DNA from: Macrostomum lignano | Taxonomy: Eukaryota | Length of the DNA stretch: 64,000 bases | Direction of reading: 5' to 3' | Assembly (NCBI GenBank): GCA_002269645.1 | Contig: NIVC01000843.1 | Coordinates: 248,001 to 312,000 of the forward strand | Shown here: piece after piece, positions 968-55,145 of the stretch | How the letters are laid out: the number at the start of each line of letters is the position of its first letter | How positions within the stretch are numbered: the stretch's first letter is position 1 | Translations under genes and position numbers: made by a program | The notes under the pieces: model-generated | The model's database searches: none | What the model was told of the DNA's origin: nothing | Seen by the model: the letters and a program-made list of their open reading frames with translations, nothing else

Positions 968-3799
968 TCAGAGTCCATCGTTGACAATTTCTAAATATTC
1001 TGTTGCGTCGCTTTGAGGCCGATTGACCTCCGTCTGATCATGGGACGACGTTGGAAGCAGCACGGAATACGTGACGGTCTTTGATTCCTGTATAAAGTTT
1101 GGGTATTGCACTGCTGTTATGTATCATGCGCTAATTATTCCAGAGTAGAACTTACATCTGCAAAATATGTTGTAGTCGCTGCTCTTGCTAGCTTCGGTTC
1201 TTGCTGCGGTTGTAACATTTCGTGGTTCACAGTTGCTGAATTCTCTTCAGAGGTTGGACTGGTACCAGTAGTCACGAGCAGTTGTACTGGCAAATCCTGC
1301 TGCAAATCATGTTTTCAAGTTGACACGTTTAGCATCAATGATTGAAAGTTAAATGTGGCGCTTTCTTTAAGAAGATGTATACCTTTTTTAATCGCCAAAT
1401 GATATTTACGACAAAGCCGCCCAAAACAGTCAATATAACGACGCCCAGCACGATTGCAACAATGAACACCAACTTATGTCGTTCTGTCTCATTGCAAATC
1501 TTCATACTTTTATTCCGATGGACGCTCCACAAAACTTTCGATTCGTTGTACTGAATTGCTTCACAATTTACCGTCAATACATTGCTAACGCTGCAATTCG
1601 GGCACAGCCAAACTGATTTAAATGTGTACGCTTTTGTTTTACTAACGTTAGCGATTAAGACCAGTGAAATACTGTTATTTAGCGAGTCGGAAGCTGCGCA
1701 GCTGTGCTCAGGAGCCGGCTCAGAATGCCAGGACTCGAATAAAAATTGTTAAGTCAGCGAGCCGGATGTGAGGCATTGACCATCGCTAGTGTTTGCAGAG
1801 ATTTTCAAATTTTCAGGCGGATCTGATATTTAAAAGACAAGTTGCTATTCATCCGAAATAGGTTATTTACCAACACACGTCAGTAGATTTATCATTTATG
1901 AACTTACAAAATACTTGGAGATGTCTGCTCTTGATGTCAAGCGGTTGTCCACTAAAACTGCTGCTGCAAGTGTAATTCCCAGCATCTTCTGGTCGAGCTT
2001 TTTCAATCATTTTTGTAGCAGGATGAGTATTGTTTCCCGAGGCAAGAGTGCGCCTGCTTGCCCGAGTGCCGAAATGCTCCAGTGTGACCCTAGTATTCGA
2101 ATCTCTGGTGCATTGCACGCTACAGTTCACAGCAAGTGAATAATTTATTGTTACCGATTGAAGCGGGATTTTAACTGCAAAGAGCAAAATATGCTTCTTT
2201 TTTTAAAATCGTTGATATAGTCCACTAAAAATCGCTTTGCGATTACAAATAGTGACTGATTTATAACTTTTTTATTGGTTTAGATCGAGCCACTTATAAA
2301 ACAAACTCAAGACAGACTCATGGATGTTACAAAGTTACTTACTTTGGGTGTAGACTTGCTCAATCCACATGTTCTCAAAATTCATGCAATTTTTTTCATC
2401 ATCACCCTCACTGGTGGCTTTCTTTCGGAGCAGTAGCATTCGAACCTACCATGAAAGCAATGAGGTGAAGATAATAAAGAGGTTAATCGTAGAAGTTGGA
2501 TGGATGCCCTATATTTTTTAGATATGGCCATACTTTTAGACAACCAGACTTACTCACTTCCCTCAAAAATGATCAAAACTGATCTGTGGTCGAGCACTAT
2601 TGCAACCTAAATTCACTGCAAATGAAGCTAAGTCTATGTGATCTTGTTGCTTTTTCTGAATCACCCAACCGCTTGGTTATCCGGATAAAACCACAAATTG
2701 AGTGCAAAATTTGCACCTGAAGATGAAGGCTTACGTACCCCTGGCCTGACGCAATCGACAGTGAGGTTATCTGCCGAAGATACTTCTTGTGGAGTCTTGC
2801 CGCAGAAATCCCACGAGCGGTTCTCTGCTTGTTCAAAGTTAGCCAGTCTGTTCTTAGTATCGCAGTGGTTTTGTCCGAAGTTCATCCCGTCTGTCTTGGA
2901 TGTCCATATCTCAATTTCTGCTGCTCGAGGGTTTAATATGCCACTTTTGTCTTTCTCTTCCCCGGTATGCAGCTCTGACGTAGTTTGAATGAAATGAAAA
3001 CCAATTGTTAAAGTCAAATCAATACTTTGACGTAAGAATCACTTCGTTTTTAGTGTATCGGATGGCGCAATACATGCTACAATGAATGTACAAGCAATTG
3101 ACCAAGAATATTGAAAACTTTCTCTGAAACGCACACAGAACGACTGCTTACCGCAGTTGTGGAAACTTAAAAGGCAGGGCCTTACGGGTGTACCACGTGA
3201 AAATAGCTACAAAACTATAACAAATTATATTATTTGGTAATTTAAACTGTCACAAGGTGCACTTCACAAAACGAAAAGGTGAGTGCTTTACTGTGTCGAT
3301 TTTTTTTATTGTAATTGATCATCACAACTACATTAAACAAACTCGTAAAACTCTGCATAGGCTATAGTTAAAAAATGCATTGAAAATAAACTCACTTCTA
3401 GCAGTGATGGTGACTGAGCTGATCAGTTTCTGCTCCTTTAGCTTTATCACAAACCAATGAAATCCATTGTCCGTATAGTTCAAGCCAACTTTAGAATGTA
3501 AGAATCTGAAGTCATCTGTCTTAGTTGCTTGATTTTTAAAGCACGTTGACTCAGTATTTCTATCATAAAAACTTGAAGACTGCCACGAATCACCGACTGT
3601 GTCTCTGGTGATGTATTCTCTACCTAAAATTTTTAAACAGCAAAGCTACATGTAAACATGATAAAAGTTGTTTAACTCAAACGTACGGTTACTCTCCGAA
3701 AATGATATCATATAATTCACACTCACATGCTTTGAAGTCTCCTGTAGTTTGTCTTATAAAAATTCCCACAGAAAAGCAGATGGTTGCCAGAATATTCAT
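968..3799 (-). pseudogene. Receptor gene A: SP - F-type-lectin-like domain - Ig1 - Ig2 - TM - ITIM/ITSM tail, with an in-frame TAA at 1749-1751
   Basis: Eight GT-AG exons with consistent phases: 3799-3727 (MNILATICFSVGIFIRQTTGDFKA), 3623-3396 (SWQSSSFY...FHWFVIKL...ISSVTITAR), 2974-2739, 2445-2343 (VRMLLLRK...CMNFENMW), 2174-1908 (C...DAGNYTC Ig), 1822-1383 (YPP... Ig2+TM, one stop), 1296-1156, 1087-968 (VTYSVL...TEYLEI). Confidence 0.8.
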
Positions 3800-4354
3800 C
3801 ACTGGAGCGGGAAAATAAAGTCACTGGTTCACGACAACTGCGGTGGAATCTGCTAGATAGATGGTAACCCAGATAATTTATAGCTACAGTGCAAGTCTCA
3901 GAATATTCTGTGGTGCAAATATATACCATACTAGATTGTTTATACCTTTGCTGGCCACTTTCAAATCTGAATAATCGATTCGATAGCAATGAATTTCTAA
4001 AATTTTCAAACGAAAATAGTTGTATTAACTGCATTTAAACTGTGCATCGGTGTGCCTAGCACTTCATCCTTTCTTCACATTCGAACAAATACACGTATAG
4101 TGCCAGCAAAAATGAAAATAGTTTGCAAGGTATTATATCTTCTGCCTTTTCAGTTTCAAATAAACCTTTTTTAACCAAAGTTATGATCACTTGAGGAATC
4201 GAATTAAGTTTAAAATTATTTTGACATCGTGTTTGCTGCAGTCATTTTACCGTTAATTTTGAATTTTGGACCTACAAGCAATATATAAGTGTGCTACTAA
4301 AAGTAGTAAGCTGAAACCCTGCAAAACAAAGAGGTGTAAATGGTTCATGCTTGA

Positions 4355-6255: not shown

Positions 6256-9200
6256 TTAGCCATTCTCAGCATCTATCAGAGGCCCATCAGATACAATCTC
6301 AATGTAATCGGTGCAGTCGCTGACAGGTCGCGTGCTCGCGCCCGACGTCTCTTGTAGAATATCAGCGTTGAATTTGCCATTAGCTTTAGGTACCAGGGCT
6401 GTATATATGCATTCAGTTTCGTTCTGAAGTGAAGAAAATACGCGTAAAAATCTGTGACCAGAAGCTGCCTCACGTGCAGTGAGTTAAGGTAGCTACGTGT
6501 TCTGCTGGTAATCACATACCCCGTACGCAGAGTTCAGTCGACTGTTGGAAGCCTGATCGAAACTCTCTGTAGATCGCGGAGGCTCTCGTGGTAGTGCTTC
6601 ATCAGCTTGATCTTGGGCTACAGCTGGCTTTGTTTCAACTTCCTGAGACTTTTGCGGTTGCACCTGAACTGCCGGCTTCTAAAGTTTATAAAATAATTTA
6701 AAACTTCTGTGTAAATTTCAGTACAAGATCGTTATAAGAAATTCATTGGAATTCACCTTTCTCATCTGGTAGATGATCGCTAGAGCAAGAATGCCCACCG
6801 CAACCACTGTCGATACGGTTAAGACGAATGCCAACCATAAGGGTTCTTTCTGCTGTTTCGAGCCAACCGACTTCGTCTCTGAATATTTTACAGTGTTCAG
6901 TGTGGCTAAAAATCTCAACTAAAAATCCTAAATAAGTATAAAAATACGAGTAATACTCTAGTCTATCCTTATTTTACCCAGATAGTTTTCCACTGACGTT
7001 AGATACTGTACTACACGTAGTCCCTGCTAAACGTGTCAACGATTTTTACATTACATTACATTACAGTATAATATTTCTCCAATGCGTATTTTAAGTCCGT
7101 CATGACTTGTGAGACGTAAAGGACTTGCGTACCACATCTAGATATTGAAAGAATTTCGGTGATGGTCGAATGCCAGGGCACTCCTGACTGAACAGCCGTG
7201 CAATTTATAGTTAAATTCGACAAGCCGATGGCTGTACAACAGTCATAGCAGGTCCAACTGGATTTTTTCACTGAACCGTTGTCAAAAGAGTTGTTCAATT
7301 CCTCGGCTGTGACAGCAACAGTGGCGTTAATTTCACTTGAAAAATTGCCATTCACAGAGCAGCTGTGATTCGCTACTGGCTCTGACTCGGATGACTTGAA
7401 CTCGAAAGTCAGCAGTTGGCTGGAAGAGTTGGTGTCGCAGTTGCTGGACTTGACTATCCCGATTGTAAGGTCCATCGGAGGATCTGAAATACGGTAGAGT
7501 CTTTTAATTATAAGAAGTCATAGTTTACCAAGAATATTAAGAGGGGCTAAAATAGTGATGCAACTAGTAAATGAATGATATAAAAGAAATCTTTAAAAAG
7601 TGGCTGCTCCGAGCTTGATGTAGTTAGCATACTGGAAGTTACGCAAATGTATTAGTTAAAATTAGAATTTCATGTTTATTTAGTACGTCTCAGATAATGC
7701 TCACTTCTTAAATTTGTTTCATACATTAAACATATAAACAGTCTTGAGCCTAATCCCTTTTAAGTGCATCAACTCACACAGCACGCGAAGATACTTAGAG
7801 CTCAACACGACACCACCTGCTCTGCAGGTGTAGTTTCCCGCATCTGATGGTTGCACATGCGAAATCTCATAAGCCTGGCTTCCGTTTGCAAGAGTTCGAT
7901 TCTCGTCGTCGCGAGTCAGAGTGATCAGTGAGGTATTTATTGAGCAGTTTGATAGGCAGCTCACTGTCACACTTGAGTTCTGTTTCACTTGTCCAATTGA
8001 AGATCCGTTCAATGTTTGAAAATCAGCTGGAGAGATCAGATATGATTAGCGGTACATTGGATGGGAACTATCTTAAGATTTTAATTTTATATAGCGACTC
8101 ACTTTGAACGCCATGGAGACCGATCCACATATCGACAAAGTTCATGCACTGCCTTTGTGGCACAGTTTCATTGGCGACATATTTTCGAAGTAGTATTATC
8201 CGAACCTAATAAATAATAATAAGTAATTAATTTAATATTTACACCCACCCCATTTGGGCCAGATGTGCAACCGACAGCTCAGCCGCAGCTATTTGCGCGG
8301 TGCATCTGAAGGCTGCGTACGGCTGTTCAGTCCAAGGACTGGGAAGTCGCTCACACAACCTCAATTACCCCAGCTAATGCTGGCACCCACTTTACAGCTG
8401 AAGCAATGCAGAGTTAAGGGTCTTGCTCAAGGACACAAATAGTTTCAGTGCGATCGGGAATCGAACCCCCAACCTTCCAGTCGAGAGTCTGATGCAAACC
8501 ACCAGGCTACCACCCCCTGTACCAAACTGAGAACTTAATAAATTCTAAAATATTCTATATTTTGCCTATAATTTGGTGGATAAAGTTGGATCATTTCTAC
8601 TCTATTTAAACTTCACGCAAAAAATCGTTACCTGATCCCTGATACAAGGAACTGTCAGTGTTTCTCCATGAGAAACATTTGTTGGCGTTTTGCCGCAAAA
8701 CTCCCATGTCCCGCTCTCTGCATTATCATACACAGAGCTGATGCTCTTTGAGTTGCAGTTCTCCGACCCGAAATCCAGGTCCGCCTGAGACGTCCAGATC
8801 TCAATGTCTGCGGCTCGAGCGTTTAAATCGTCTCCAAAATTCGTAAGTTCTGTCTCGCTTAAGCCTGTTAAAATTTATAAATTGATAAAATAAAAACGTT
8901 AAAAAGCCTGATTTGAAAGTTTATTCACAAATTTTGCAATTAGACTCACTTCTGACTTTGACATTCACAGAGCTGATCAGTTCAGGCTTCTTTAGCTTTA
9001 TCACAAACCAGTGAAATCCTGCATCGGCTCCCGCATCATTTCCGTTTTTGCCCTCCTCTGTGTGCAAATATAGGTAGCTGCCGACTTGGTCACCACCAAC
9101 GGGCCGCTTGTAAAAGCAATATGCCTGCCTATTATTATTCAAAATCGACGACTGCCAGGAGCTTTCAATGGAGCCTTTCCGAACTTCCATTTGGCCTGAA

Positions 9201-9690
9201 ATGTTGCAAATGTCACTTTAGACACGGCAAAACACGCATAGTATAGTAAGAGCCGCTCAGTGGTAAACTCGTCTGACTCTGTCGCCACATTCACATTCAT
9301 TTGGGGCTTGCTGACGAAGATTCAGACCCACAAGGGCCAACCCCCAAGGCACAGAGAGTGTACATGTCTGACGATTAGAAAGTCAGAGGACCGCTGTACA
9401 CCCTGTGGCAGCGTGTATGAGTGCTGTGTCTGCGTACAGAGTATTGGGGCACTTGTATGTGCTTAGGAGTCAGCATAATGTGCAAAATTGTCCTTGTGGG
9501 ACGATGTCACCGAAGGCGCTGCGACAGGGTTCCTACTGTCCTTGTTAATCGTATTATTGAAACAGTTTTAGACACCAAAACCACTGCAGCTTGTACACAT
9601 GTACTTACATCTTTGACAACTCACTGATCCAAGAAATGTTATGACCAATGCAGTCACCCAGATCCATGAGAACGATATAAGTCGATTCAT
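6256..9690 (-). CDS. Receptor gene B, apparently intact: SP - F-type-lectin-like - Ig1 - Ig2 - TM - ITSM tail
   Basis: Exons 9690-9609 (MNRLISFSWIWVTALVITFLGSVSCQR), 9195-8950, 8864-8632, 8205-8103, 8026-7778 (DAGNYTC), 7483-~7133, ~6905-6757 (TM LWLAFVLTVSTVVAVGILALAIIY), 6678-6520, 6423-6256 (CIYTAL...TDYIEI). Phases are consistent and no stops were seen. The exon 6 donor and exon 7 acceptor are less certain. Confidence 0.85.
8207..8516 (-). mobile_element. tRNA-derived SINE in intron 3 of gene B
   Basis: Head ggtggtagcctggtgg...ggttcgattccc; body matches the other copies. Confidence 0.8.
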
Positions 9691-10799: not shown

Positions 10800-11905
10800 A
10801 CACTTCGATGCCAGACACTTCAGTAACAGACACTTCAGTAACAGACACTTCAGTAGCAGACACATCAGTAGCAGACACTTCAGTAACAGACACTTCAGTA
10901 GCAGACACATCAGTAGCAGACACTTCAGTAACAGACACTTCAGTAACAGACACTTCAGTAGCAGACACTTAGGTGCCAGACATTTTGGTGACAGACATTT
11001 TGGTGACAGACATTTCAGTAACAGACACTTTAGTAACAAACACTTCAGTAACAGACACTTCAGTAACAGACACTTCAGTAACAGACACTTTGGTGCCAGA
11101 GACTTCGGTGCCAGACATTTCGATGCCAGACACTTCGGTGCCAGACATTTTGGTGACAGACACTTCAGTAACAGACACTTCAGTAACAGACACTTCAGTA
11201 ACAGACACTTCAGTAACAGACACTTCGGTGCCAGAGACTTCGGTGCCAGACACTTTAGTAACAGACACTTCGGTGCCAGAAATTTTGGTGACAGACACTT
11301 CAGTAACAGACATTTTGGTGACGGACACTTCAGTAACAGACACTTCGGTACCAGACACTTCAGTAACAGACACTTCAGTAAGCAGACACTTCAGTAACAG
11401 ACACTTCAGTAACAGACACTTCAGTAGCAGACACTTAGGTGCCAGACACTTCGGTGCCAGACATTTTGGTGACAGACACTTCAGTAACAGACATTTCGGT
11501 GCCAGACACTACGATGCCAGACACTTCAGTGCCAGATGCTTCGATGCCAGACACTTCGGTGCCAGAAATTTTGGTGACAGACACTTCAGTAACAGACATT
11601 TTGGTGACGGACACTTCAGTAACAGACACTTCGGTACCAGACACTTCAGTAACAGACACTTCAGTAACAGACACTTCAGTAGCAGACACTTCAGTAGCAG
11701 ACACTTCAGTAACAGACACTTCAGTAGCAGACACTTAGGTGCCAGACACTTCGGTGCCAGAAATTTTGGTGACAGACACTTCAGTAACAGACACTTCAGT
11801 AACAGACATTTCGGTGCCAGACACTTCGATGCCAGACACTTTGGTGCCAGACACTTCAGTAACAGACATTTCGGTGCCAGACACTTCGATGCCAGACACT
11901 TCGAT
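10800..11905. repeat. 15-bp minisatellite (CAGACACTTC + AGTAA/GGTGC/GATGC variants)
   Basis: Read directly; ends in gtcgagtcactttagaacc, as does the copy at 24.3 kb. Confidence 0.95.
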
Positions 11906-14273: not shown

Positions 14274-15135
14274 CTTGGTGGGTGCCGCTGTCTCTTGGTG
14301 GGCGCCCCTGTCTCTTGGTGGGCGCCCCGGTCTCTTGGTGGGCGCCATTGTCTCTTGGTGGGCGCCATTGTCTCTTGGTGGGCGCCCCTGTCTCTTGGTG
14401 GGCGCCATTGTCTCTTGGTGGGCGCCCCTGTCTCTTGGTGGGCGCCCCTGTCTCTTGGTGGGCGCCCCTGTCTCTTGGTGGGCGCCATTGTCTCTTGGTG
14501 GGCGCCATTGTCTCTTGGTGGGCGCCCCTGTCTCTTGGTAGGCGCCATTGTCTCTTGGTGAGCGCCCCTGTCTCTTGGTGGGCGCCATTGTCTCTTGGTG
14601 AGCGCTATTGTCTCTTGGTGGGCGCCCCTGTCTCTTGGTGGGTGCCCCTGTTTCTTGGTGGGCGCCATTGTCTCTTGGTGGGCGCCATTGTCTCTTGGTA
14701 GGCGCCCCTGTCTCTTGGTGGGTGCCCCTGTCTCTTGGTGGGTGCCCCTGTCCTATGGTGGGCGCCCCTGTCTTATGGTGGGCGCCCCTGTCTTTTAGAG
14801 GCGCCCTTGTCTTGTGGGGGCGCCCCTGTCTTATGGTGAGCGCCCCTGTCTCTTGGTGGGCGCCATTGTCTCTTGGTGAGCGCTATTGTCTCTTGGTGGG
14901 CGCCCCTGTCTCTTGGTGGGTGCCCCTGTTTCTTGGTGGGCGCCATTGTCTCTTGGTGGGCGCCATTGTCTCTTGGTAGGCGCCCCTGTCTCTTGGTGGG
15001 TGCCCCTGTCTCTTGGTGGGTGCCCCTGTCCTATGGTGGGCGCCCCTGTCTTATGGTGGGCGCCCCTGTCTTTTAGAGGCGCACTTGTCTTGTGGGGGCG
15101 CCCCTGTCTTATGGTGGGTGCCCCTGTCTCTTGAT
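14274..15135. repeat. 20-bp minisatellite (TGTCTCTTGGTGGGCGCCCC/CCAT) with a 278-bp higher-order duplication
   Basis: Read directly; identical ORF-track peptides start at 14595 and 14873, and at 14608 and 14886. Confidence 0.95.
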
Positions 15136-21919: not shown

Positions 21920-21976
21920 TGTACCAAACTGAGAACTTAATAAATTCTAAATTATTCTATATTTTGCCTATAATTT

Positions 21977-29355: not shown

Positions 29356-29365
29356 AAGCAACATA

Positions 29366-41764: not shown

Positions 41765-44545
41765 GTGATGCATCAGATGAAAAGACATTTGTATTGTAAA
41801 AAGTAATAAACAGTGATTTTACATGTATTGCTTTCAATAAAAGAAGCAGCTCGGCATAGTTTGGGACTACAGCAGGTAAATATAATTATTTACACGCTAG
41901 TAATGCATAACTGCCATCAATTATTTTTTTTAATATCGCAACTCAAGTATTTACCGAAGTAAAATAGTCGCTTATATACAACTTATAGTGGCAGTTTTCC
42001 CAATAAAAATTTACGGATTTGTAAGACAAATTTAGTTTAAAACTACTTCAGCTTCAGTCAGATATCCGATATATAATAATACTTCAGGAAGGAAACAGCT
42101 GCACCTACGCTTCGCTCATGCCTTCAACAGCTGAACCAAATTCTAACGAACAGCGGCCAGAAAGTGAAGTCACGGAATATTTGATGATTATTAAGGATGG
42201 TATTTGATACTGAAGAAAGAATAGTTATTAACCAACATTGTGACTGTGTTCTAGCTCGTAGAAGCTTTGTAATTGGAAGCATGTAATTCTAAATTAAAAT
42301 CTACAATGTTTTGAGGAAATATTTACATGCATGATAAAATTTAGTAATTTATTAAACTACGTGCATATGAATGCTTTAACAGTAAGCCAACTCTTTGTTG
42401 CGCACCTTCTCAAACAATAATCAAGTCGCCAGCCGTCCGGAACGTCGAGATATTCGACGATTCTGCTAGAAGGTCGGATTTTTCCCATAAGCGCTAGTGT
42501 ATTCAGTTCACCCCTGTGCGCCAATCAGCAATTTCACCAGCACGTCGATCACATGCGTCTGCATCAGCTCTGGCTTCGTTGGTCACTGGCCTTCACCCAG
42601 GCGGAGCTTCTAGACCTTCAACAGGTGGCACCAGGTGACTATGGACACCCTGATGCGAATTTCTCTAGTTTCGCTGATCAAGCATTAATAATGGGCTAAC
42701 ATTAACACCTGGTCATTTTCAGCTAGACTCTCAAACGTGAGACGTGATGACGTAATTAGTTAATTGAACCGTAAATTGAACCGAATTTTCGCCAAGAGAA
42801 AAAATGACAAAAAATTATCAACTTTTCTATATGGACTCAAGATCAAGTAGAATTAACAAAAGTTGCTAAAACAATTTTTAAATTCATTTTTTCGGTGTCC
42901 ATAGTCACCTGGTGCCACCTGTTGAAGGTCTAGAAGCTCCGCCTGGGTGAAGGCCAGTGACCAACGAAGCTAGAGCTGATGCAGACACATGTGGTCGACG
43001 TGCTGGTGAAATTTGGAGGCTTGGCAAGGCTGCACTGAGGCGCAGTGCTGATTGGCGCACAGGGGTGAACTGAATACACTGGCGCTTATGGGAAAAATCG
43101 GACTTCCTAGAAAAATCGTTGATTATCTCGACGTTCCAGAGGGCTGGCGACTTGATTCTTGTTTGAGAGGGTGCGCAACAAATAGTTGGCCCGTGTTCTT
43201 GAATTTCGTGTGCCTGCGTTGCTCCGTTCCGGCGCAGCAAAAAAGTTGTCGGGGGGGATCCCCCCCTCTTGGTAGTTCTGCTGTAAATCGAATTCGTAGC
43301 TGTCTTTTGCGTTTTCAAGAATCCCCCACAGCGCAAGTGAAATAAAAATCAGCAAAATGGAATACTTAGTCTTTAAATTACTCGTAATCTAAGAGCTCTG
43401 TACTTTTATGGGCTGTTTTTAAACACCTTTTAGTAAGCATCTCATTCCGATTAATTCACTCAAACTCGAAATGCCTACACTCGTCTGAGCATTGTATTTC
43501 TTTTCATTCGATTTTTCTGTTTTAAAGTACGACTCCAGATCCTCATTTCTACTTTTATGATAAAATTATTACATTTTTAAATTCAAGTGCCTAACTGTAC
43601 ATTTCTCAAAATCTGAGAGACTTGAATTAAATATTTGGCTAACTAATGCACATATGTAACTTAGGAGGAAAGAGTAGCGAAAATCAGTGAACGATGTTAA
43701 ATGTAACTCAAAACATATAACTCAAAGCCCATGCAGTCACCGAGCCTCAACAACCAGAGTTTCAGATGACCAATTATGACGTGAAAAACCTGGCTATTTT
43801 AGGGAAAATACCTGAATCAGGATGAAATCGAATGTTCTAAGTGGTAGAATTATTGATAGTTCGAGTAGTAGCAAGTTAGGGGTCTTCGTGTTTTCATTTT
43901 TTCTCCTGATATCTTAGCGCCGAACCTGAACCAAGCATCCCACCTACCTCGAACATCGAACCCGGGGCCAAAACCCAAACCCGGTACTAAACCCAAACCC
44001 AGTTCCAAAACCCAAATCCAGTATCAAAACCAAAATCCTGTACCAATATCCGAACCCAGTACCAAAACCCGAACCAAATTTAATATGAAAATATAATAAT
44101 TTATAATCAACCATAGTTCACAGCTCTTGGTTTTATTTGATGACCATTCTATAATTTATAATTTCGAAATCCTGGATATGTTTTTACGAGTTATCAAGTT
44201 ATTGAGATGGAGCGAGAATATATTCGTGTTTAAAATGGTCACGATGATTCTCTGGCGACGTTAGCTCCAAATAGTTACGCTCCATATAGTTACTTATAGT
44301 TATTGCCGAATACAGAATCAAGCGCTTCCTCAATCGCTAACGTAAACTGACCGAGGCGGCGAAACGTTGTCAGTCCTATTGGTTGTCATGGCTACCATGT
44401 CATCCACGTAGACGCTTTGAGCAGCTCGCTGCATTCTCAGCTCGGCTGGAGGATCGCTGGGTTGGTTAGGAGGATGAGCACAACTCTGGAACTTTTAAGT
44501 GTGGCCGTTTATCAAAGTTATCAAATAATTTTTCGGAATTAATTT
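41765..44545 (-). repeat. Inverted copy of host segment 34188-36968 (includes gene E exon 7 in antisense)
   Basis: Mirror-image ORFs in the track (35378-35828 vs 42905-43355). Confidence 0.93.
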
Positions 44546-44551
44546 CGAAAG

Positions 44552-46324
44552 GCCTACCTTTTGGGCTAATATACTTACTATTATTACTACCATTATACCT
44601 ACTATGTACATACTATTATACTACCCGCTATTAAATATGCTGCACTAAAACCAACTTTTGAAAATACATAGCATGTTTTGGTCGATTCTCCCTCACGTCT
44701 CTGTCCCTACACGTGCTCTGCCCGCTTTGGTCTCTGTTTGTGTACCTCTCTGTAACGTCTCTGTACGCTCAGACTGGTTTCTCCGTCCCCGCACGCGCCT
44801 CTACTAAAGTTTGCTGTTACCTACCCCCACACACTGCTCTCTGTCTCCCTCCGCGCACACCTCACTGCCCTTGCATGTAACTTGCATGCCTTGCATGCCC
44901 TGTCCTGCCCTCGCGTGGGTCCCTGCCTATACATAGCTACCGGACCCTACCTCTCTCTGTGCCTTGCTCGCAACTCTGTCCCAGGCCCCCCTTCATACTT
45001 CTCTGTCCCGGGCTGCAACTGGCTGACACGCGCCTCTCTGTTCCCCAGCCTGCGTGGCTGCCTACCCCTGCACACTGCTCTCTGTCCCCCTCCGCGCCTC
45101 TCTATCATCCTATTCCTGCAGCTGACCGTGCCGTTCAGCTCTGTTCACGCACGGCTCCACCCCTGCCCGTGTCTCACTGTACCGCCCTGTGTGGCTCCCT
45201 TACCCAGCGCGTTTGCTTCCTATCTCCCTCCTGCTCCATATGTTTCTGTTCCCTCACACTACGCACGCGTGGCTGGCTCTCTGTCCATACACATCTCTGC
45301 TCCTCCACTCTATCCTCGCGTGGCCCCTTGACGGTTCGCATGCCCCTGCATACCCTGCCTGCCTCTCTGTCCCCTGCAACTGGGGAGGGAGCTCTCTATC
45401 CTCTGTATGGCTTTCTCTGTGGGGTGTGTGTGACTCACACTGCCTCTCTGTCCTAGCATGCGCCTCTCTGTCCACGCCGCGTGCTGCGACATGCCGGGGC
45501 TGCGCAGGGTGCCTCCACGCACTCTCTGTCCCAGCACCCCGTGTCTCTCTGTACCCCGCCTCATACTGCTACAGGGGGCCGCCTGTTATCTGTCCCCCTG
45601 CTACAGGGGGATGGCGGCTCTCCACGCACTACCCCTCCTGCTACAGGGGCTGCTCTCTGTCCCCAGCTACAGGGCTGCTCTCTGTCCCCCGCATGGGGGG
45701 TTGGTTGCTCAGTGTACAGGGCTGCGTCAGCATCGGGGTTAAAACTTCTCGCTCCCTATACCCCCAAACCGTGTAGTGGCCTAGTATGGGCGCGCCCTGG
45801 GTTCGATTTCGCTAGTTGAGATGTGGGTGAGAGAGGGGAAGAGGCTAGGTGGGGGCAGGGCGTGAGGTATAGGGTGCCTGCGGGGTACGTATCGTTGACT
45901 ACATATCGGGAGAGTGGCAGAGTGTACATATCGGTAGAGTGTACACTCGGGGTGCCTGCGGCTCGGTAGAGTGTACACTCGGGGTGCCTGCGGCTCGGTA
46001 GAGTGTACACTCGGGGTGCCTGCGGCATGGGCGCCTGCTGCATGGGCGCCTGCGGCTCGGGAGGGTGCGCTTGGGATCTGATTGATTTGGGATCTGATTG
46101 ATTTGGGATCTGATTGATTTATTGGGATCTAATATCGGTAGGTGCGCCTGCGGCTGGGGAGGGTAACCTGCGGCGCTTGGCGCCTGCGGCGCGCGCGCGC
46201 GCCGAGCGCCGATATCGATACGCGTATCGATCACCTAGTGATCGGGGCGCCAGCCAATGAGAGGCGAGGAGGGTTGACACCCACCTCACCTCCAAAATCG
46301 CGCCATTCGGAATCCCTTAGTAGT
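44552..46324 (+). repeat. Direct duplicate of the element's right end (39994-41764)
   Basis: Near-identical sequence; duplicated ORF-track peptides offset by about 4560 bp. Confidence 0.93.
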
Positions 46325-48067
46325 CATCACTGTATACAGAGAATCGAAGAAAAATATTTACAACTCAATCCTGTGTCTGATCTTTTTGACTTAGGATATT
46401 TAAAAATCTTTTTTTGACTTTGAACCATGGGGAAATTACTAGTTAATATGAATTTCAGACACTTTCGCAGACAGTTTAATTGAGCACGAAGATGCTTTCT
46501 CAATGGATTTTTTTACTCCGACTGACCTGATAGTTGTCATTAGACTTTGGAAGTTCAACCATGCAAATGGCAGAATTTGTATGCAAATTTTCATGCCTCA
46601 CCGCCACTCCGTTGTTAGGCGCTGGTGGTTCTTCATTTGAAACTTTCTCAGTTGAGTGTCTGGAAAGCAATTGAAACATTTTTTATGTAGGGTGGAGTAA
46701 TGCGTAGTAGGTTCCATTCATTGAAAGACTTATACAATGATACAATTATGTTTTAGCAATCCAATAAATTTTATTTTCCTGCAGTATTCCAACAGCTTTA
46801 GAGCTGATAAATTAACACACATGGACATTGGTTCCGGTACAAGGCTCCCTGGAGGAGACTTTTCGAACGAATCGTTTTCGAATATTTTCCGTCAATTCGT
46901 GGCCGAGTTCTTTGATGTCGCGTAAGTCCTTCCTTCACATTGCTGACACACGGAGAAATGCTTTATGTGTGAATTGAACTCAATTTGGAAGTGAAAAGTC
47001 AAAGAACAAAATCAAGGCTAAAAATTGTGGTTCAGATCTAAATGGGAACTCGACTGTGCTTTATGAAGAGGCTTCCCCAAAGGGGATAAATGTGGAAAAA
47101 GGCGATTTCCTGCGAACTTCTGGCTCTAAAATGGATGCGGTGGCAGATTGCGGCTGATTCTTTATCGAATCTCACGACTAGACCGAATGTGTTAATTTTA
47201 CATCCACAACTTTATTACGTTGATGTGACTTCATGTAAATATTTTTTCTCGTGATAAATTTATAAAAATTATTCTAATAGCTATTATAAATTTTATGCAT
47301 ACAACGTCGAATAGATTGATTCTAAAAACAGGCATTTTGGCTTGGATTAGCTGCCCACATCGAAATAGTTTGATTTACATGCAGGTACCGTCACACTAGA
47401 ATTATAATTTCATTAGCTATAGCTATATATCTCAATCCATATGCATGGCTAACAATTATATTCAATCAGTGCCTGAATAAGACTAAAAGCGGTCGACCGA
47501 CAAATACACGTAGCACGTAGAAGGATAGGGTACCTCGCTTCTCCCTTCTTTCTTAGAAACACTCATGATAAATAGCTCAATATCATTAGCTCGGTAGCTA
47601 AATCTTATAGCCATCAGTATCTATATGATAGCAAATTCTATTTAGATATGAAATCGCAAACGTGTTTAATTTCAGTCTAGTCCGATTAAAAGCTTCCTAT
47701 TTTACGCAATATAACTTTTTAGCTGCCTGTTGATATTGCCTAATTAAAGATTCAATTTACACGAGCAATAGACTTTAAGTTGTCTAACTTCGTGAATGAA
47801 AACCTAAGTTTTTTATTGGATTCTTTTAATAGCTCTTTTAATAGTTCTTAAAAAGCTACAAAACCGGTATATAGACAGTTTGACTCACACAAATACAAAT
47901 ACGTTCTGTGTTTCTCAGCAAGGACTACTAGACTAGATGTTCCAGTGGTCCTTGTTTCTCAGTAGCTAGCTAGAAAATTGTTTCTTGATCAATAATCTTG
48001 TTGTTCGTTGAACGACACATAAACAAGTCGTTCTAGCAAATTACTGTATATATGTAGCATAAATTAC

Positions 48068-49685
48068 TCACCTTACAGTTGCTAGCTTTCGTTCAAGCGT
48101 TTGATGGCTTCCAATAGCCTGTTGGAAATATTTTAATATTTTGTTATTTATATTAATAATTCTGTACTTTAATTGCTGCGTAGGCGCATGGATTGTACAT
48201 AAGGAAAGACACAAAAGATCAGAAAAGTTGCATATTAATACCATTTTTCTACAAGCAAATATCGCTCCTGCGACAACAGCTATTAACAGAATCGAGGAAA
48301 CTGCCATCAATATGTATATGTAGAACTGAGTAAGTTCAGGTGAGGATGGCCTTTGAAGCTCTTTAGTTTCCTTAGCTGAAAAGTATAAATGAATTAATTT
48401 TTATGGGTACTGTAATGCCTAGCCAAAATGATAAAATGAATCAAGTCTGGTGTGTCTAATCTTAATGGACTAATTTCAATGAGAACTGGACAACTCACAA
48501 GCAACTGATAGATAGCCAGAGCTGACAACAACTCCACCAACACTGCACGCATAGACTCCATAATCTTCCTCATTCACAGAGTCGATTACATAGGTCTCAT
48601 TTCCAGTTGCAAGTGTCCGGTTAGTGCTCAAGTGTATTAATTTGATACTTGCCAAACTATCAATGCAACTCACATTGCATCTCACCTTGGCACTGGTATT
48701 CGAGCTTATATTAGACGGCGGTGCTATGTCAATGGTAACTGAAAGAATAAATAAATGTATTTTATGGCTAATGAAAAAGAGTAAAAAGTATGTAATCTTA
48801 ACTCACTATCGATCGAGATATACTTATAGGCCAAAATACTAAAAGCCATGCTCTCAATTGCGTTGGTTTTGTTGTTCCACGCAGGCTTGCGAAGCAGTAC
48901 TGTTTTGGCCTGAATTTTTTTGAGGGAATTGCTTGGTATATAAGTGTGTTAAGTTATTAACACACCTTTACTGAATTATAGACTGATAAGCTCACCTCCT
49001 GGACACTGGAACAGTTCACTTGAATTGCAGTTGGCTTAGAAGATCCACAGAAAGTCCAATATTTCTTGTTAGTCTCAAATACTGAGCTCATATTTCTGGA
49101 GTTGCACTTTTCAGAACCAAATCCAATTGTTTCTGTTGTTGTCCAAACTTCAATTCTCTCTGCTAGCTGGCTTTCGCTTGTAGCTGCATTTTTGGGATGC
49201 CACTTTACTTGCATATTATAATAAAATATTTTTAATAAATCAATTAACTGATAATGTATGAATAGGTACGAGTATGCTCACGTGTGATAAAAAACCTGTC
49301 TGTCCAAACAGTACTTCTAAGCTGGACGGCCAACCAGTGATAGCCTTTGTCAGCGGCTGAGCCTTCGTCAGCTGATTTGAAGGCCCCGTCCAACTGACTT
49401 CCCCCAATCCCACAAATAAACGGGCCTGTAGTGTACTCTTTGAAACTCGATGACTGCCAGGTCTTTTCTCCTGCACCAGTAGTTACAAATTCAGTACCTA
49501 GTAGTAATTTAAAATATGTAATGCATGTAAGCATTCAAAACTGTGATAGAATTTATTATTGACTATTGAGACATTTACGAAAATTTCTATTACTTACATT
49601 CCAACGCAGACTCCGCAAAATATTGGAGCAGGCAAGTCGCCATAAAAATGTAAATTAAAGCAGATATCAGTGCGGAATTAGTCAT
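48068..49685 (-). CDS. Receptor gene G: SP - F-type-lectin-like - Ig1 - TM - short tail
   Basis: Exons 49685-49598 (MTNSALISALIYIFMATCLLQYFAESALE), 49497-49270, 49207-48996, 48909-48807 (103 nt), 48738-48499 (EDYGVYAC), 48375-48242 (TM), 48118-~48077. There is no Ig2 exon, and the end of the tail is uncertain. Confidence 0.78.
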
Positions 49686-51928: not shown

Positions 51929-54900
51929 TTATTCAGATTGCTGTTCAATACCATCGGAGATGATCTCCAAGTATTCGGTGGCATCGCTATTGACCCGACT
52001 GCTCTGCGACAACTCCATCATCTGTTCGTCGGGATTAACCGTATCGTAGCAGCACTCGCTCGTTATCTGTCTCTGAAGTGGTGATTGACAAATTCAACAA
52101 GTAGTGGTAGCAACGTTCAATTTTATAGCATACAAAAGATGATCTCGAGAAATTACCGTTGTTTTTGCTTAGAGAGATAATACAGATTTTCTCGATTTTC
52201 AATAAATTACTACTTGCTAGAGTACTAACGCGAGGAACAGTCGGAAGAGATTATTTCAAGACTGTGACCCACGCACAGCTGTGAAAACAAATCGAGTTTT
52301 TCCGATTTGCTCCTAGTTGAATAACTTCTATATATGGTAAGCCATGACCTCAAATGTCCTCGCGTTTAAAAATCTGTTCTGCTCAGAAACTAAACTCCTG
52401 GCCTAACTATCAACTTGGTTAGCTCAACTATCAAGCCAACTCGAAGCAAACACATGCTACGAGTTTCATGTGATTCATGTAGTTTCGTGTGATTTTCGTA
52501 ATATCGAAATATAAGAAAGCGTCCATTGGGCGCTTTAAAAAGTCGAATTTTCGTCTCAGAAAATCATATTTTAAAGAGACAAATTGCACTTTTAACAGTA
52601 GGAATGCCAAGCCATTTTTCCGCCCGTCGAACAACCAAGGTGGGGATTTTCCTTTTTTCATATACGAGTAGAATCCCTCCCTGACAATTTCTTTTGCTGC
52701 GCCAAAACGAAGCAACGCAGGCACACGAAATTCAAGAACACGGGCTAAGTTTTTGTTGCACGTACACCTTATCAAACAAGAACCAATTCTTCAGCCCTCT
52801 GAACCGTCGAGATATTCGACGATTCTGCCAGAAGGTCAGATTTTTCCCATAAGCGCTAGTGTATTCAGTACACCCCTGTGCGCCAATCAGCACTATGCCT
52901 TAGTGCAGCCTTGCCAAGTCTCCAAATTTCATCAGCACGTCGACCACATGCGTCTGCATCAGCTCTGGCTTCGTTGGTTACTGGCTTCTGGACCTACAGC
53001 AGGTGGCACCAGGTGACTATGGACACCCTTGTTGCGAATTTCTCTAGTTTCGCTGATCAAGCCTCAACTGCTGAGCATCCTCGGCGTAGATGTGCATAGC
53101 TTTGATATGAGGATATATTTCAGCGTTGAGAATCGTACTTTCGCAAACAACTATAGAAAGATAGATCAGCACAGGCCAATCATAACTGAGGCTTTTAAGA
53201 AAAGATAAAAAATGAAATGTTGTTATGGTTTCGCTCTTTTACTCAAAATATAAAAAGTCGCTTCACCAATCATCCGCAGACTCACCCGGAAGAGTTCAGA
53301 ACTATTGCTATCCTCATTAACTTCTGCTTCCAGCACCGATATGCTGGGCTGGGTGACATCGGTTGTGGTTGCTGCCACGGCTTTCTGCTGAGGCGCATCG
53401 CAGTTCAAAGCGGCCATTGGATGAGAAGAGACCGCTGGGGGTTCATCTTTGTTGCTTTGAGGCTGGCTGCAGAACTGATGGTTTGTAAAAACAAAAATTA
53501 GCTCAAGGTAATTGTTGCATCAATACCAATCTTGCTCTTTTGCTTGGAGCTTTGTACTATGCAATACTTACCTTCTTGCGAGCAAAGACGAATAAAGCGG
53601 ATGCCAATATTAACAAAATAAAAACAACTGTCAGGACTATTACCAGCGGCCAAGGTTCTAAAATAGTTTTTTTAACCGAAGATTCAAATCGTATTACTTG
53701 ACGCCAATGTCTGTCCAGTATTGCCATTTACTTTTGCTAAAAAAACTTACTATTTTTTGGGCATTCTGTGCCAATAGTTGTTTTAGCTTGATGCCGATTA
53801 GCATCGCAGATTACAGACACATTGGCTGAGCTGCTGCAGTTTGAGCACAGCCACTGGGACCTCAGCAAATTGTCAGCCACGTCGCAGGTTGGATTTTTCA
53901 CGGCTCTAATTGTCAGCTGCTGGCCTTTAGAGTCGAATGCTTTGCACAAGTGCTTGGATGCGTCTGGAGACTCAAAGGTGACTTTGACATCAGCTCTTGG
54001 AGTTGCTGCATTGCAGATGCCCAACTCTGTGGAGATTTTGTATCGACTTTGCGGACCTGAAAGTACGAAGTCATTCTGATTTCTGATTTGTGTGCATCTA
54101 CCAAACTGAAATCCATTTCAAATCAGATCGAAAAATTAAATTTTTTTCATCTTAACTAGAAATATCTCAATGCTTATATGCCAACATGCCTTCTCATATT
54201 AGAGCAAGCATACACAATTTAACTCACCCTCAAAGTCGATGCGATTAAGCCACATGTTCACAAAGTTCATGCACTGATGGTAGCTATTTGTCAGATTCGC
54301 AACGAACTTTCTAAGCAGCAACATGCGGACCTGAAAGTTTACAAAATTTTAGTAGTCACACTTTTAAGTGTCAACACTAATGTTCTAAATATAAAATCTA
54401 TAAATCATTGTAAGTGACCCATCAAATTGCTGGAATGTACTTACTGTTCGGTCGCATTTTACAGTCAAGTGCTCTCCTTTATCTATTTTTGATTTTGTTT
54501 TACCGCAGTAGCTCCAAGCCGACGGGTTCGAATTGAAAACCGAACTGATTTGCCAAGAGCTGCAGTGCTCAGACATGAGCTGGCTGCTCAGGTCCGACTG
54601 TGAGGCAAAGAGCTCAACGTCTGCTGCACGGAACTCTACTGAATATCCTGGTACATCTGAAATTTTTTTGATTCCATTTTTTCATGACATAGTAGACTTG
54701 GTGCCTTCGCAGAATATATATTCGCAAAAATACATAAATTTGGCAGCAGAAACTCCCTCACCTCTACTTTCGACAGTGACAGACCGAATTCTTTCACTTT
54801 GATTCAGCAAAAGGACAAACCAATGGTATCCGTCAACTGCAGAAGAGTTGCGATCTCCGGAGTGAATGAAGTCCCACTGTCCCGTCCTGATTTCTGATCG

Positions 54901-55145
54901 AGTGTAAAAGCACCTTGATGTACTAGTATAAGAGCTCGTATAGTGAGATGACTGCCATGAGCTGGCGATCGCTTTGCGCGTGACTTGGAGTCGGCCTGAA
55001 GCATCAAAATTATTGCTGTTTTTTTTAAATGAAAAATTATCAAAAACATCTCAACTTATTTCTTTAACTTACACAGTCCCGAAGTCGCGGCAATCAGACT
55101 TTCAATTACCGATGCAACAAGCAGAACGCAGGCCAGAAGCTTCAT
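51929..55145 (-). CDS. Receptor gene F, apparently intact: SP - F-type-lectin-like - Ig2-type - TM - ITSM tail
   Basis: Exons 55145-55073 (MKLLACVLLVASVIESLIAATSGL), 54995-54762, 54656-54445, 54330-54228, 54056-53751, 53657-53572 (TM), 53474-53286, 52072-51929 (CCYDTV...SDATEYLEIISDG). Phases are consistent. Confidence 0.85.

Follow-up and report, generated by a model that had tools for sequence, protein, structure and literature searches.

A tandem and inverted cluster of candidate recognition receptors with galactose-binding-domain-like heads in the flatworm Macrostomum lignano

What kind of protein is encoded by a cluster of related multi-exon loci in the genome of Macrostomum lignano, and what might it do at the cell surface? 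To our knowledge, very little is known about recognition receptors and inhibitory signalling in flatworms. The window analysed here is a 64,000-nucleotide stretch of contig NIVC01000843.1 (positions 248,001 to 312,000), in which our hand-built gene models place N-terminal exons at six loci. The models reach from 968, where gene A stops, to 55145, the start codon of gene F (Table 1), exactly the limits given in an earlier sequence-only reading of this DNA. We give a probability of roughly 70% to the reading that this tandem and inverted cluster encodes lineage-restricted type I transmembrane glycoprotein receptors, together with the signalling mechanism proposed below. Judged from their sequences, the genes are good candidates for flatworm recognition receptors.

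Table 1 Features of the receptor cluster and its neighbours, in window positions.
Feature	Position	Strand	Description
Gene A	968-3799	minus	8 exons; GT-AG at every intron
Gene A exons	3727-3799, 3396-3623, 2739-2974, 2343-2445, 1908-2174, 1383-1822, 1156-1299, 968-1087	minus
Gene A nonsense codon	1749-1751		In-frame TAA
Gene A tail motifs	1058-1075; 986-1003		ITIM VTYSVL; ITSM TEYLEI
Gene B	6256-9690	minus	9 exons, intact 570-aa ORF
Gene B GBD-like domain	8950-9195, 8632-8864, 8103-8205	minus	Exons 2-4
Gene B Ig; membrane-proximal beta-sandwich; TM	7778-8026; 7133-7483; 6757-6878	minus
Gene B tail motifs	6394-6411; 6295-6312		CIYTAL; TDYIEI
Fragment C2	15318-17022	minus	Seventh copy, 5'-truncated, without exons 1-3
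C2 exon 4; Ig exon; membrane-proximal domain	16920-17022; 16597-16845; 15773-16090	minus	Exon 4 of 103 nt
C2 TM; short tail	15594-15703; 15318-15416	minus	SVYVYE at end of tail
Ty3/gypsy-type LTR retrotransposon	17066-21644	plus	LTRs 17066-17365 and 21345-21644, 99% identical
Pseudogene fragment C	25639-26825	minus	Exons 1-4 only; 88% DNA identity to B
C exons	26741-26825, 26434-26669, 26112-26343, 25639-25739	minus
Gene D	29345-34403	plus	7 exons, intact, 399 aa from first ATG
Gene D GBD-like domain	29528-29761, 29867-30078, 30195-30297	plus
Gene D membrane-proximal domain; TM; tail exon	33539-33850; 33936-34021; 34245-34403	plus
Gene D LLTEII	33956-33973		Internal Glu of TM
Perfect inverted repeat	34188-37178 / 41555-44545
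Orphan second copy of D's last exon	44330-44488	minus	Inside the same inverted repeat
Gene E	46500-49685	minus	8 exons, intact 391 aa; most divergent copy
Gene E Ig exon	48499-48738
Gene F	51929-55145	minus	8 exons, intact 448 aa
Gene F GBD-like domain	54762-54995, 54445-54656, 54228-54330	minus
Gene F membrane-proximal domain; TM	53751-54056; 53572-53657	minus
Gene F tail motifs	52037-52054; 51962-51979		CCYDTV; ITSM TEYLEI
WQSS...HW(F/L) exon, minus-strand copies	3396-3623, 8950-9195, 26434-26669, 49282-49497, 54762-54995	minus	Five of six copies
WQSS...HW(F/L) exon, plus-strand copy	29528-29761	plus	Sole plus-strand copy

Starting from the 5' end, a signal-peptide exon of 73-94 nt precedes each of the six copies of the WQSS...HW(F/L) exon; it stops after one base of a Cys codon (phase 1), the rest of which is supplied by the WQSS exon. 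Next come a second domain exon (188-236 nt) and a 103-nt exon, the latter shortened to 101 nt solely in the frameshifted copy C, as the sequence-only reading had noticed. All introns of the hand-built models have GT-AG borders, exon phases are conserved among the models, and the ORFs of B, D, E and F are intact. That reading had described six loci on one exon plan. Six loci with N-terminal exons and the 103-nt exon stand; the uniformity does not. The motif EIW, attributed to all copies, reads VELF in D and F and IEVW in E; a canonical Ig exon (with D.G.Y.C) is absent from D and F, which have only a membrane-proximal beta-sandwich exon, whereas E has the Ig exon and no membrane-proximal one; C consists of exons 1-4 alone, A is interrupted by a stop codon and D has an extra last exon. 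A seventh copy, C2, had been overlooked.

Sequence homology among the copies is far beyond chance, with 23 invariant columns in an alignment of five of them and tblastn matches to database paralogs at E 1e-5 to 1e-100. Duplication in the assembly was ruled out as the source of the six copies, which share 25-65% protein identity except in the pairs D/F and B/C. The exon plan of gene F is that of the RNA-seq-derived GenBank model of the paralog P0016, which supports the splice junctions at the paralog level; exon sizes are 73/234/212/103/306/86/... in F and 73/231/209/103/312/86/... in the paralog PAA92527.1. The GenBank models PAA92527.1 and PAA49974.1 come from a genome-guided RNA-seq assembly (PMC5730564). 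With one TM helix per complete member, the gene models bear out the claim that a multigene cluster here encodes type I membrane proteins.

A profile built from contiguous exon-2 peptides and run on 1.84e9 proteins gives 15 matches, one of them spurious (P0010, a repeat protein). Setting aside P0004, P0006, P0009 and P0012, whose source is not established, the matches are 'uncharacterized' M. lignano proteins and one metagenome contig, with no homologue of Hydractinia Alr or of vertebrate Siglec or LILR among them. The closest proteins are A0A1I8G0L0 (P0001) and A0A1I8J0M2 (P0030), both from M. lignano; gene E is about 97% identical to P0001 over shared exons, the P0001 model skipping exons 3-4. 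A word-index protein search, less sensitive in that it missed most paralogs from the exhaustive profile search, gave no match with full-length B as query, and 1 and 4 proteins with alignments as queries, nothing beyond the family. The family thus sampled appears to be restricted to Macrostomum and one environmental organism. P0001 and P0005 are named 'Ig-like domain-containing' in UniProt. Proper annotation of the family would be worthwhile because its relatives stand in the databases with incomplete models and wrong names ('Sushi', 'MATH', 'Fibrinogen C-terminal', 'Ricin B').

The N-terminal domain was modelled with AF2 for P0016, which is 65% identical to D and F in this domain, with window exons as alignment rows. 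The model has pLDDT 80-97 over most of residues 71-200 and in the 60s-70s over residues 25-70. In a Foldseek search of the PDB its best 50 matches are all galactose-binding-domain-like (E 5e-5 to 6e-4; target TM 0.55-0.68 for single-domain entries), including the CBM32 module 2j7m (E 4.9e-5, TMt 0.65), the N-terminal domain of galactose oxidase, lectinolysin 3lek, FBP32 3cqo, AAA 1k12 and APC10. Modelling on a 50-65% identical paralog thus shows a predicted galactose-binding-domain-like (discoidin / CBM32 / F-lectin) fold, as the sequence-only reading had expected. Its assignment to F-type lectins is not borne out. The F-lectin motif H-x24-R-G-D-C-C-x-E-R is absent, and RGDCC occurs nowhere in the 13-sequence alignment A3, in which the conserved His and two Arg are present at variable and longer spacing. 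The Pfam families F5_F8_type_C and F5_F8_type_C_2 match three of five window domains, all below cut-off (E 0.02-0.2; best E 0.021, at 15.9 bits with a cut-off of 27.8, and 0.11; F5_F8_type_C_2 in gene B, E 0.02-0.19), and HMM matches to FBP32 3cqo (E 0.1) and AAA 1k12 (E 1.2) are non-significant, all pointing to the same superfamily as the fold. The top PDB HMM match of a five-sequence profile, the N-terminal domain of Vibrio thermolabile hemolysin (E 0.09), was set aside as noise or a distant fold relative. Given the missing motif and the sub-threshold sequence matches, only the fold is shown and lectin activity is a guess. Ligands of discoidin/CBM32 folds include sugars, collagen, peptides and phospholipid, so that the ligand cannot be read from the fold.

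Exon 5 of A, B, C2 and E qualifies by its sequence as an Ig domain, in agreement with the sequence-only reading. It carries DAGNY(T/I)C or EDYGVYAC and matches Pfam Ig_3/Ig_2 at E 2e-6 to 3e-3 (Ig_3 E 4e-4 in A, 7.5e-6 in B and 2.2e-6 in C2), scoring 18-28 bits, just under the cut-offs of 27-30. The membrane-proximal exon has no Pfam match. An AF2 model of exon 6 of B is all-beta (pLDDT 66, pTM 0.62), and its best Foldseek matches are Ig domains (SYG-2 D4, E 1.6e-3), none reaching E <= 0.001. The Cys-Trp-Cys spacing is atypical, and the domain may tentatively be called Ig-like. Gene A runs from signal through GBD-like domain, Ig and a membrane-proximal domain fused to the TM to the tail, and gene E from signal through GBD-like domain, Ig and TM to a tail with neither ITIM nor ITSM. 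A complete member would comprise a cleavable signal peptide, a GBD-like beta-sandwich domain of ~185 residues from three exons, at most one Ig domain and at most one Ig-like beta-sandwich close to the membrane (each on a single phase-1 exon), then a TM helix and a tail in the cytoplasm.

The tails of A, B and F contain TxYxx(I/V), which those of C2, D and E do not. Of the three inhibitory tyrosine tails claimed earlier, all three stand in this sense; the canonical ITIM is found in A alone, the corresponding motifs of B and F having Cys at position -2. The C-terminal TxYxEI(V/I) lies 24-33 residues past the ITIM-like tyrosine in A, B and F and occupies the same C-terminal position in the distant paralogs P0003, P0008 (whose tail additionally has VVYAQV) and P0016; paralogs that keep the ITSM-like motif share merely 25-40% identity. 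In the mechanism that we propose for the receptors, the distal domain would bind an extracellular ligand, with a glycan as the default guess and a protein or lipid equally possible. In A, B and F, the ITIM-like tyrosine near the membrane and the C-terminal TxYxEI(V/I) tyrosine would be targets of Src-type kinases, and the spacing of 24-33 residues, as in ITIM-ITSM tandems, would dock tandem-SH2 phosphatases (SHP-2/Csw type) or SAP-like adaptors, giving a signal that modulates and probably inhibits. The receptors whose tails are of another kind (SVYV in D and C2; E) may signal differently or act as counterparts.

The same tyrosines could be read as YxxPhi signals for AP-2 (YSVL, YLEI, YIEI, YTAL), in which case the proteins would be endocytic or scavenger lectin-like receptors for glycan-bearing cargo from food or microbes. 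Every conserved tail tyrosine fits YxxPhi, many lectin-type receptors are endocytic and the N-terminal fold is that of carbohydrate-binding modules; we nevertheless consider this improbable, as YxxPhi leaves position -2 free whereas the six deeply diverged members A, B, F, P0003, P0008 and P0016 all have Thr at -2 and Glu/Asp at +2, and the spacing of the two tyrosines suits tandem-SH2 docking. Endocytic and phosphotyrosine-docking roles can coexist.

D and F differ sharply along their length. Their ectodomains share 92% protein identity between the mature N-terminus and '...ANVSVIC', and the underlying DNA falls into two blocks, one of 93.7% identity that covers exons 2-4 with exactly 5 nt of flank on either side and one of 90.7% over most of exon 5; signal exon and peptide, stalk, TM and tail are without similarity. 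In sequence, D and F look like a paired-receptor couple, with near-identical ectodomains and unrelated TMs and tails. The TM of D holds an internal Glu, conserved in P0030, so that its charged residue is acidic rather than basic, and its tail contains SVYVDD and SVYVSD and neither ITIM nor ITSM. The TM-to-tail junction and the tail of D match P0030, and its last exon sits inside the perfect inverted repeat that also holds the orphan copy (Table 1). C2 shares 93% DNA identity with B over exon 4 and the Ig exon, the downstream exons being divergent. These comparisons show, at the sequence level, that the genes are mosaics produced by duplication and by exchange of segments whose breakpoints lie in introns.

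The sequence-only reading proposed a diversifying family. In the GBD-like domain, D and F have dN 0.037, dS 0.057 and omega 0.65, from 22 differences, too few for a conclusion on diversifying selection. D and P0030 differ at about 20 positions, each of them in ectodomain or TM, while the 52-residue tail has no change, a distribution that is suggestive only. A bolder proposal is that the cluster is a paired-receptor system of an origin independent of vertebrate Siglec, KIR and LILR, in which gene conversion or exon exchange would move the jelly-roll head among ITIM-ITSM tails (F, B, A) and the tails of D and C2, driven by conflict with microbes or mating partners; we hold this to be possible but rather unlikely. 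The innate-immune or allorecognition role put forward by the sequence-only reading is hypothetical. Allorecognition was rejected as a leading idea, Macrostomum offering no biology for it; this free-living animal is not known to fuse.

Adhesion, patterning or reproductive recognition with no defence role (neuronal wiring, neoblast niche, sperm and egg, mating partner) would draw on the same domains. Discoidin folds and Ig domains are commonly combined in receptors for adhesion and guidance (neuropilin, DDR, Caspr), oyster gamete recognition uses proteins of the F-lectin fold, and SYG-2, the closest structural match to the membrane-proximal domain, is a protein of synaptic adhesion. Core developmental adhesion genes seldom show rapid turnover, pseudogenes, exchange of ectodomains among tails or restriction to one lineage; the same features would fit reproductive proteins, and M. 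lignano is an outcrossing hermaphrodite. Taken together, we rate this group of roles as still less probable than endocytosis.

Defects in A, C and C2 show that the cluster is in part decaying, and two or three of the copies are, by their sequence, pseudogenes or fragments. Gene A is probably a recently inactivated copy or a null allele. C has lost 10 nt from exon 2, which leads to a stop, 1 nt from exon 3 and 2 nt from exon 4. C2 is located downstream of the Ty3/gypsy-type element, which splits it from the remainder of its duplication unit. These lesions, and the retroelements, minisatellites and perfect repeats that fill the region, could mean that most of the cluster is a set of decaying duplicates without function, in a genome that is rich in repeats and was recently duplicated, and that the tyrosine motifs are due to chance. 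We regard this as very improbable: four long multi-exon ORFs are uninterrupted and have lost none of their splice sites, the ITSM-like motif is kept across paralogs at 25-40% identity and RNA-seq-derived annotation includes paralogs.

Pfam gives no match for ORFs within the large repeats or for a putative endonuclease ORF adjoining the RT ORF, an exact look-up of a 771-aa primase-like ORF gave no record, and ARAGORN called no tRNA in a tRNA-like repeat within intron 3 of B and C.

Each module of the favoured receptor reading (discoidin/F-lectin-fold head, Ig, ITIM-ITSM-type tail) is well known; the arrangement was not found described. No characterised family of the same architecture turned up in literature searches or among the names of database relatives, as the sequence-only reading had tentatively supposed. 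Should the tails indeed recruit SH2 phosphatases, inhibitory signalling of the immunoreceptor type would reach a spiralian phylum; otherwise the cluster would still represent a predicted uncharacterised, expanding surface-receptor family. If the paired-receptor proposal holds, ITIM-ITSM/tandem-SH2 inhibitory logic and paired-receptor evolution would be present in Platyhelminthes, in a worm amenable to RNAi and transgenesis. As M. lignano is transparent, regenerates and has established RNAi, in situ hybridisation and transgenesis (PMC5730564), these hypotheses are directly testable.

Among known systems, the F-type lectins (AAA 1k12, FBP32 3cqo, lectinolysin) have the same fold (Foldseek E 1e-4 to 3e-4, TM about 0.6), and their '...GyHWfvvqL...issVtv.aR...Ra.diE' aligns with 'PWWRVDL...ItSVtItNR...ERi.GaEI' in a non-significant HMM match that includes both motif Arg. 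Their vicinal-disulfide motif is replaced here by a variable insert at the exon 2/3 boundary, scores stay under all curated cut-offs, and they are soluble, whereas the window proteins are predicted to be membrane-anchored with Ig domains. The best structural matches are CBM32/discoidin domains (2j7m, E 4.9e-5). Similar to the window family, DDR1/2 and neuropilins are single-pass receptors with a distal jelly roll of ligand-binding type, but their kinase, CUB and MAM modules are absent here. Biomphalaria FREPs, CREPs and GREPs are likewise a spiralian lineage-specific multigene combination of IgSF and lectin-type domains; these are secreted, with N-terminal IgSF and a C-terminal fibrinogen, C-type lectin or galectin domain, and unlike the window family have neither TM nor signalling tail. 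Hydractinia Alr proteins are clustered Ig-like single-pass receptors with ITIM-type tails, and Botryllus fester-type receptors are reported to be clustered recognition receptors with ITIM-type tails (PMC12582321). Both are, like the present family, lineage-specific invertebrate single-pass receptor clusters, but they have no homology to it and a different distal domain, and their allorecognition role is proven genetically, with extreme polymorphism.

The comparison with Siglecs combines most of these features in one system. CD33-related Siglecs are clustered type I receptors with a distal glycan-binding domain, Ig domains and a TM, and their tails carry a membrane-proximal ITIM and, about 20 residues on, a C-terminal TxYxx(V/I). 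The window family shares the cluster, the type I topology, a distal domain of glycan-binding type, Ig domains and, in A, B and F, two-tyrosine tails. It differs in that the Siglec lectin domain is a V-set Ig and the one here a galactose-binding-domain-like jelly roll, and there is no sequence homology. The pairs Siglec-5/-14 and Siglec-11/-16 have near-identical ectodomains, kept alike by gene conversion, on different TMs and tails. D departs from the Siglec counterparts in the acidic, not basic, residue of its TM and in its tail of 55 residues. As with the paired Siglecs, D and F share an ectodomain and differ in TM and tail, and such ectodomain sharing with tail swapping marks vertebrate receptors under host-pathogen conflict.

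A six-frame motif scan of the window recovers six copies of a 'WQSS ... HW(F/L)x(I/V/L)xL' fragment, at ~3.5, 9.1, 26.5, 29.6, 49.4 and 54.9 kb, together with three 'EIW...W.FCG' and three 'DAGNY.C' fragments, in eukaryotic DNA of 38-61% GC with many retroelements and minisatellites. Gene models, built by hand after reading all loci, follow a single exon plan with conserved phases. The signal peptide is encoded by one exon of 73-94 nt, whose last base opens a Cys codon; three exons of 216-246, 188-236 and 103 nt encode a single N-terminal domain of ~185 residues (the head); each further extracellular domain occupies one phase-1 exon. A transmembrane (TM) exon follows, and the tail takes up one to three more. 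All introns of the models are GT-AG. The sequence-only reading was accurate in its six loci and common exon plan, and exact in its limits, with 968 falling on the first gene's stop codon and 55145 on the ATG of the last.

Beside the six loci with N-terminal exons (A–F), the cluster contains a seventh, 5'-truncated copy, C2, which had no separate entry in that reading; two or three copies are defective. Domain content differs from copy to copy: A, B and C2 have an Ig and a membrane-proximal domain, E has Ig only, and D and F have the membrane-proximal domain only. Self-comparison of the window shows that B, C and C2 are three units of one tandem duplication, in which C has lost its 3' part and C2 its exons 1–3.

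Receptor loci and other elements of the window
Feature	Position	State or content
A	968-3799	single defect: a TAA codon (1749-1751) within the membrane-proximal domain
B	6256-9690	570 aa, intact
C2	15318-17022	begins at exon 4; Ig, membrane-proximal domain, TM, 33-residue tail
C	25639-26825	exons 1–4 only; three frameshifting deletions, including the 103-nt exon reduced to 101 nt
D	29345-34403	399 aa, intact
E	46500-49685	391 aa, intact
F	51929-55145	448 aa, intact
Young Ty3/gypsy LTR retrotransposon	17066-21644	in intron-3-like sequence upstream of C2; 300-bp LTRs 99% identical; 1115-aa pol ORF with RT, RNase H, integrase
16-bp satellite	21976-23014	65 copies, 99% identity; occupies the place of C2 exons 1–3
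Large minisatellite arrays (15-, 20-, 16-bp units)	10812-11902, 23627-24308, 14274-15143, 21976-23014, 30937-31228 / 32311-32719	include the 16-bp satellite of the row above
tRNA-like repeat	about 8440-8530 and 25930-26010	intron 3 of B and C
Inverted repeat	34188-37178 / 41555-44545	2991 bp, perfect (100%); carries the last exon of D
Direct repeat	39994-41764 / 44552-46324	1.77 kb, 99.7%; overlaps the inverted repeat
Related piece	52673-52988	0.3 kb, 87%; last intron of F
GC-rich block	56000-60100	61% GC, between CT-rich simple repeats
612-aa ORF	57833-59671	weak reverse-transcriptase match (RVT_1, E 1.8e-4)
771-aa ORF	61673-63988 (-)	PriCT_2, D5_N, DUF5906; D5-like primase-helicase

Two inverted minisatellite arrays form a foldback-like arrangement within the 3.2-kb intron 4 of D, and the tRNA-like repeat of B and C, 'GGTGGTAGCCTGGTGG...GGTTCGATTCCC', in which ARAGORN calls no tRNA, is probably a SINE. 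The large inverted repeat, with the direct repeat that overlaps it, is either a very recent rearrangement, a transposon-like structure or an assembly artefact. The block with the 612-aa ORF is read as a retroelement, and the adjoining ORF has no Pfam match for an endonuclease. The window ends in a block that is AT-rich and has a strong skew; the 771-aa ORF, with TDRQ repeats at its C-terminus, lies there, and no recorded gene has a product exactly equal to it. D5-like primase-helicases are known from large DNA viruses and from mobile elements that resemble viruses, and this ORF may represent an endogenous element of viral or virus-like kind.

Full-length B finds no relative in a word-indexed protein database, and the five aligned N-terminal domains find one there, M. 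lignano A0A1I8G0L0 (P0001), about 97% identical to E across the shared exons, in a model that skips exons 3–4. An exhaustive search of 1.84 billion proteins, with a profile of six contiguous exon-2 peptides, gives 15 cluster representatives at E <= 1e-3, five of them at E <= 1e-10. The source was looked up for ten: eight are from M. lignano, one is a metagenome gene and one a spurious repeat protein; P0001 is an eleventh representative of known source, also M. lignano, and P0004, P0006, P0009 and P0012 fall outside the look-up. The eight M. lignano entries, in UniProt or GenBank, are named 'uncharacterized', 'hypothetical' or by unrelated rule-based labels; the family is mis-annotated in public databases, with several models fused or truncated. 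A 1.6-kb metagenome contig from an environmental eukaryote (JGI 3300040801, Ga0450804_0569779, 1-1598) carries, in tandem, a head domain whose exons 2 and 3 are fused in a single ORF, a segment resembling exon 4, and an Ig exon, so the family occurs in at least one organism other than M. lignano. Between D and A0A1I8J0M2 (P0030) identity is 93%; the ~20 differences all fall in the ectodomain or the TM, and the 52-residue tail has none. These identities place the window in M. lignano or a very close relative of it. Because the M. lignano genome is partly duplicated (PMC5730564), such close database copies are probably homeologues or alleles. Ill-fitting UniProt rule-based names ('Sushi', 'Mab-21', 'Fibrinogen C-terminal', 'LAM_G', 'MATH' or 'Ricin B-type lectin' domain-containing) are attached to P0003, P0007, P0011, P0015, P0017, P0025 and P0031.

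The GenBank annotation of GCA_002269645.1 was built by genome-guided RNA-seq assembly (PMC5730564). In it, the exons of PAA92527.1 (P0016), a paralog, measure 73/231/209/103/312/86/201/75 nt, and those of our F model 73/234/212/103/306/86/189/144 nt; the TM-to-tail junction of D is reproduced in P0030 and that of E in P0001. Judged by these matches to the window models, the exon plan is transcript-supported at the level of the family, via paralogs rather than the window copies.

Sequence comparison alone does not place the N-terminal domain: the Pfam hits are F5_F8_type_C_2 (E 0.02-0.19) and F5_F8_type_C (E 0.11), and a profile of 13 family sequences, run against PDB sequences, retrieves FBP32 (3cqo, E 0.1) and eel agglutinin (1k12, E 1.2). 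The structure was predicted for P0016, whose domain is 65% identical to those of D and F, from an alignment with 39 rows, made up of family proteins and window exons, with pLDDT of 80-97 across most of residues 71-200, in the 60s-70s at 25-70 and <50 for most of the remainder. Foldseek matches this model to 52 PDB structures at E <= 1e-3, and the top 50 are all galactose-binding-domain-like. Among them is CBM32 2j7m (E 4.9e-5, TM-score 0.65); also in the top 50 are the galactose oxidase N-terminal domain, the F-lectin modules of lectinolysin and SpX, FBP32, AAA, the F5/8-type-C domains of chitobiases, and APC10. The galactose-binding-type fold proposed earlier is thus borne out in the model, and membership of the F-type lectins is not: the R-G-D-C-C-x-E-R segment is absent from the receptor family, with a variable insert at that place, the exon 2/3 junction. 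A non-significant alignment with AAA puts one conserved His and two conserved Arg on or close to the positions of the F-lectin triad. Ligands of this fold are sugars, collagen, peptides or phospholipids, protein by protein, and because of this range we keep 'lectin' as a hypothesis.

The DAGNYxC exon scores E 2e-6 to 3e-3 against Pfam Ig_3/Ig_2, slightly below the curated cut-offs; on these scores, the motif and UniProt 'Ig-like' labels, we accept it as an Ig domain. The membrane-proximal exon has no match in Pfam and a conserved pattern of its own (PP..., F.S..P..H.C, S.W, V.C.A.Q). For B, AF2 predicts an all-beta sandwich with moderate confidence (pLDDT 66, pTM 0.62), the top structural matches of which are Ig domains (SYG-2 D4, BTN, and the constant domains of TCR and MHC), none better than E 1.6e-3; the domain is tentatively Ig-like.

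A single strong hydrophobic helix is present in every complete protein. Beyond it, the tails of A, B and F carry (A/C)T(E/D)Y(L/I)EI(V/I) 11-18 residues before the C-terminus and, upstream of it by 24-33 residues, CIYTAL in B, CCYDTV in F and, in A, the canonical ITIM VTYSVL. Equally spaced pairs occur in the paralogs P0003 (CSYLSV and TVYLEI) and P0008 (VVYAQV and TEYTEI), which have only 25-35% identity in the head; P0016 has the C-terminal TEYLDI only. From residue frequencies, the chance of a TxYxx(V/I) in a tail of such length is estimated at roughly 2%, which, with the conserved Thr at -2 and acidic residue at +2, argues for a selected motif of phosphotyrosine type, beyond a plain YxxPhi sorting signal. 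The tails of D and C2 carry SVYV(D/S/Y) motifs, and E has neither motif type.

D and F, in opposite orientation and 25 kb apart, are mosaics of shared and unrelated segments. Between a point 5 nt before exon 2 and one 5 nt past exon 4, with the two internal introns counted in, their DNA identity is 93.7%; in the membrane-proximal exon it is 90.7% over the first 276 nt, and elsewhere the DNA is unrelated. In protein, the mature ectodomains are 92% identical as far as '...ANVSVIC', and the signal peptide, stalk, TM and tail have nothing in common. The tail of F is ITSM-type; D has its SVYV tail and a Glu within the TM helix, conserved in P0030. Similarly, B and C2 are 93% identical in exon 4 and the Ig exon and have diverged in the downstream exons. 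This is the paired-receptor pattern of Siglec-5/-14, PIR-A/B, KIR and related families, and we propose paired receptors as the most interesting reading of it. D as the 'activating' partner is a candidate and not established: the charge in its TM is acidic, and no adaptor is known. The dN/dS between D and F is 0.65, from 22 differences, too few to decide on positive selection. The innate-immune, allorecognition and diversifying labels of the sequence-only reading stay hypotheses in a case built purely on sequence.

Literature searches for Macrostomum ITIM or lectin receptors, the gene identifiers, F-type lectin/ITIM and invertebrate ITIM/ITSM lectin-Ig proteins found nothing on this family, which we would class from its sequences as multigene ITIM/ITSM-type surface receptors in a new domain architecture. 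To our knowledge, such receptors are essentially undescribed in the flatworm phylum, and the value of the cluster lies in a family that is expressed but uncharacterised, bears a suggestive signature of paired receptors and belongs to a tractable model animal. The nearest matches of the head, in fold, are the CBM32, discoidin and F-lectin domains. Among invertebrates, the snail FREPs, of IgSF-plus-lectin type, are analogous and non-homologous, as are two sets of clustered, lineage-specific recognition receptors, Hydractinia Alr and the Botryllus fester family (for the latter, PMC12582321). In function, as read from these genes, the closest analogue, again non-homologous, would be the CD33-related Siglec cluster.
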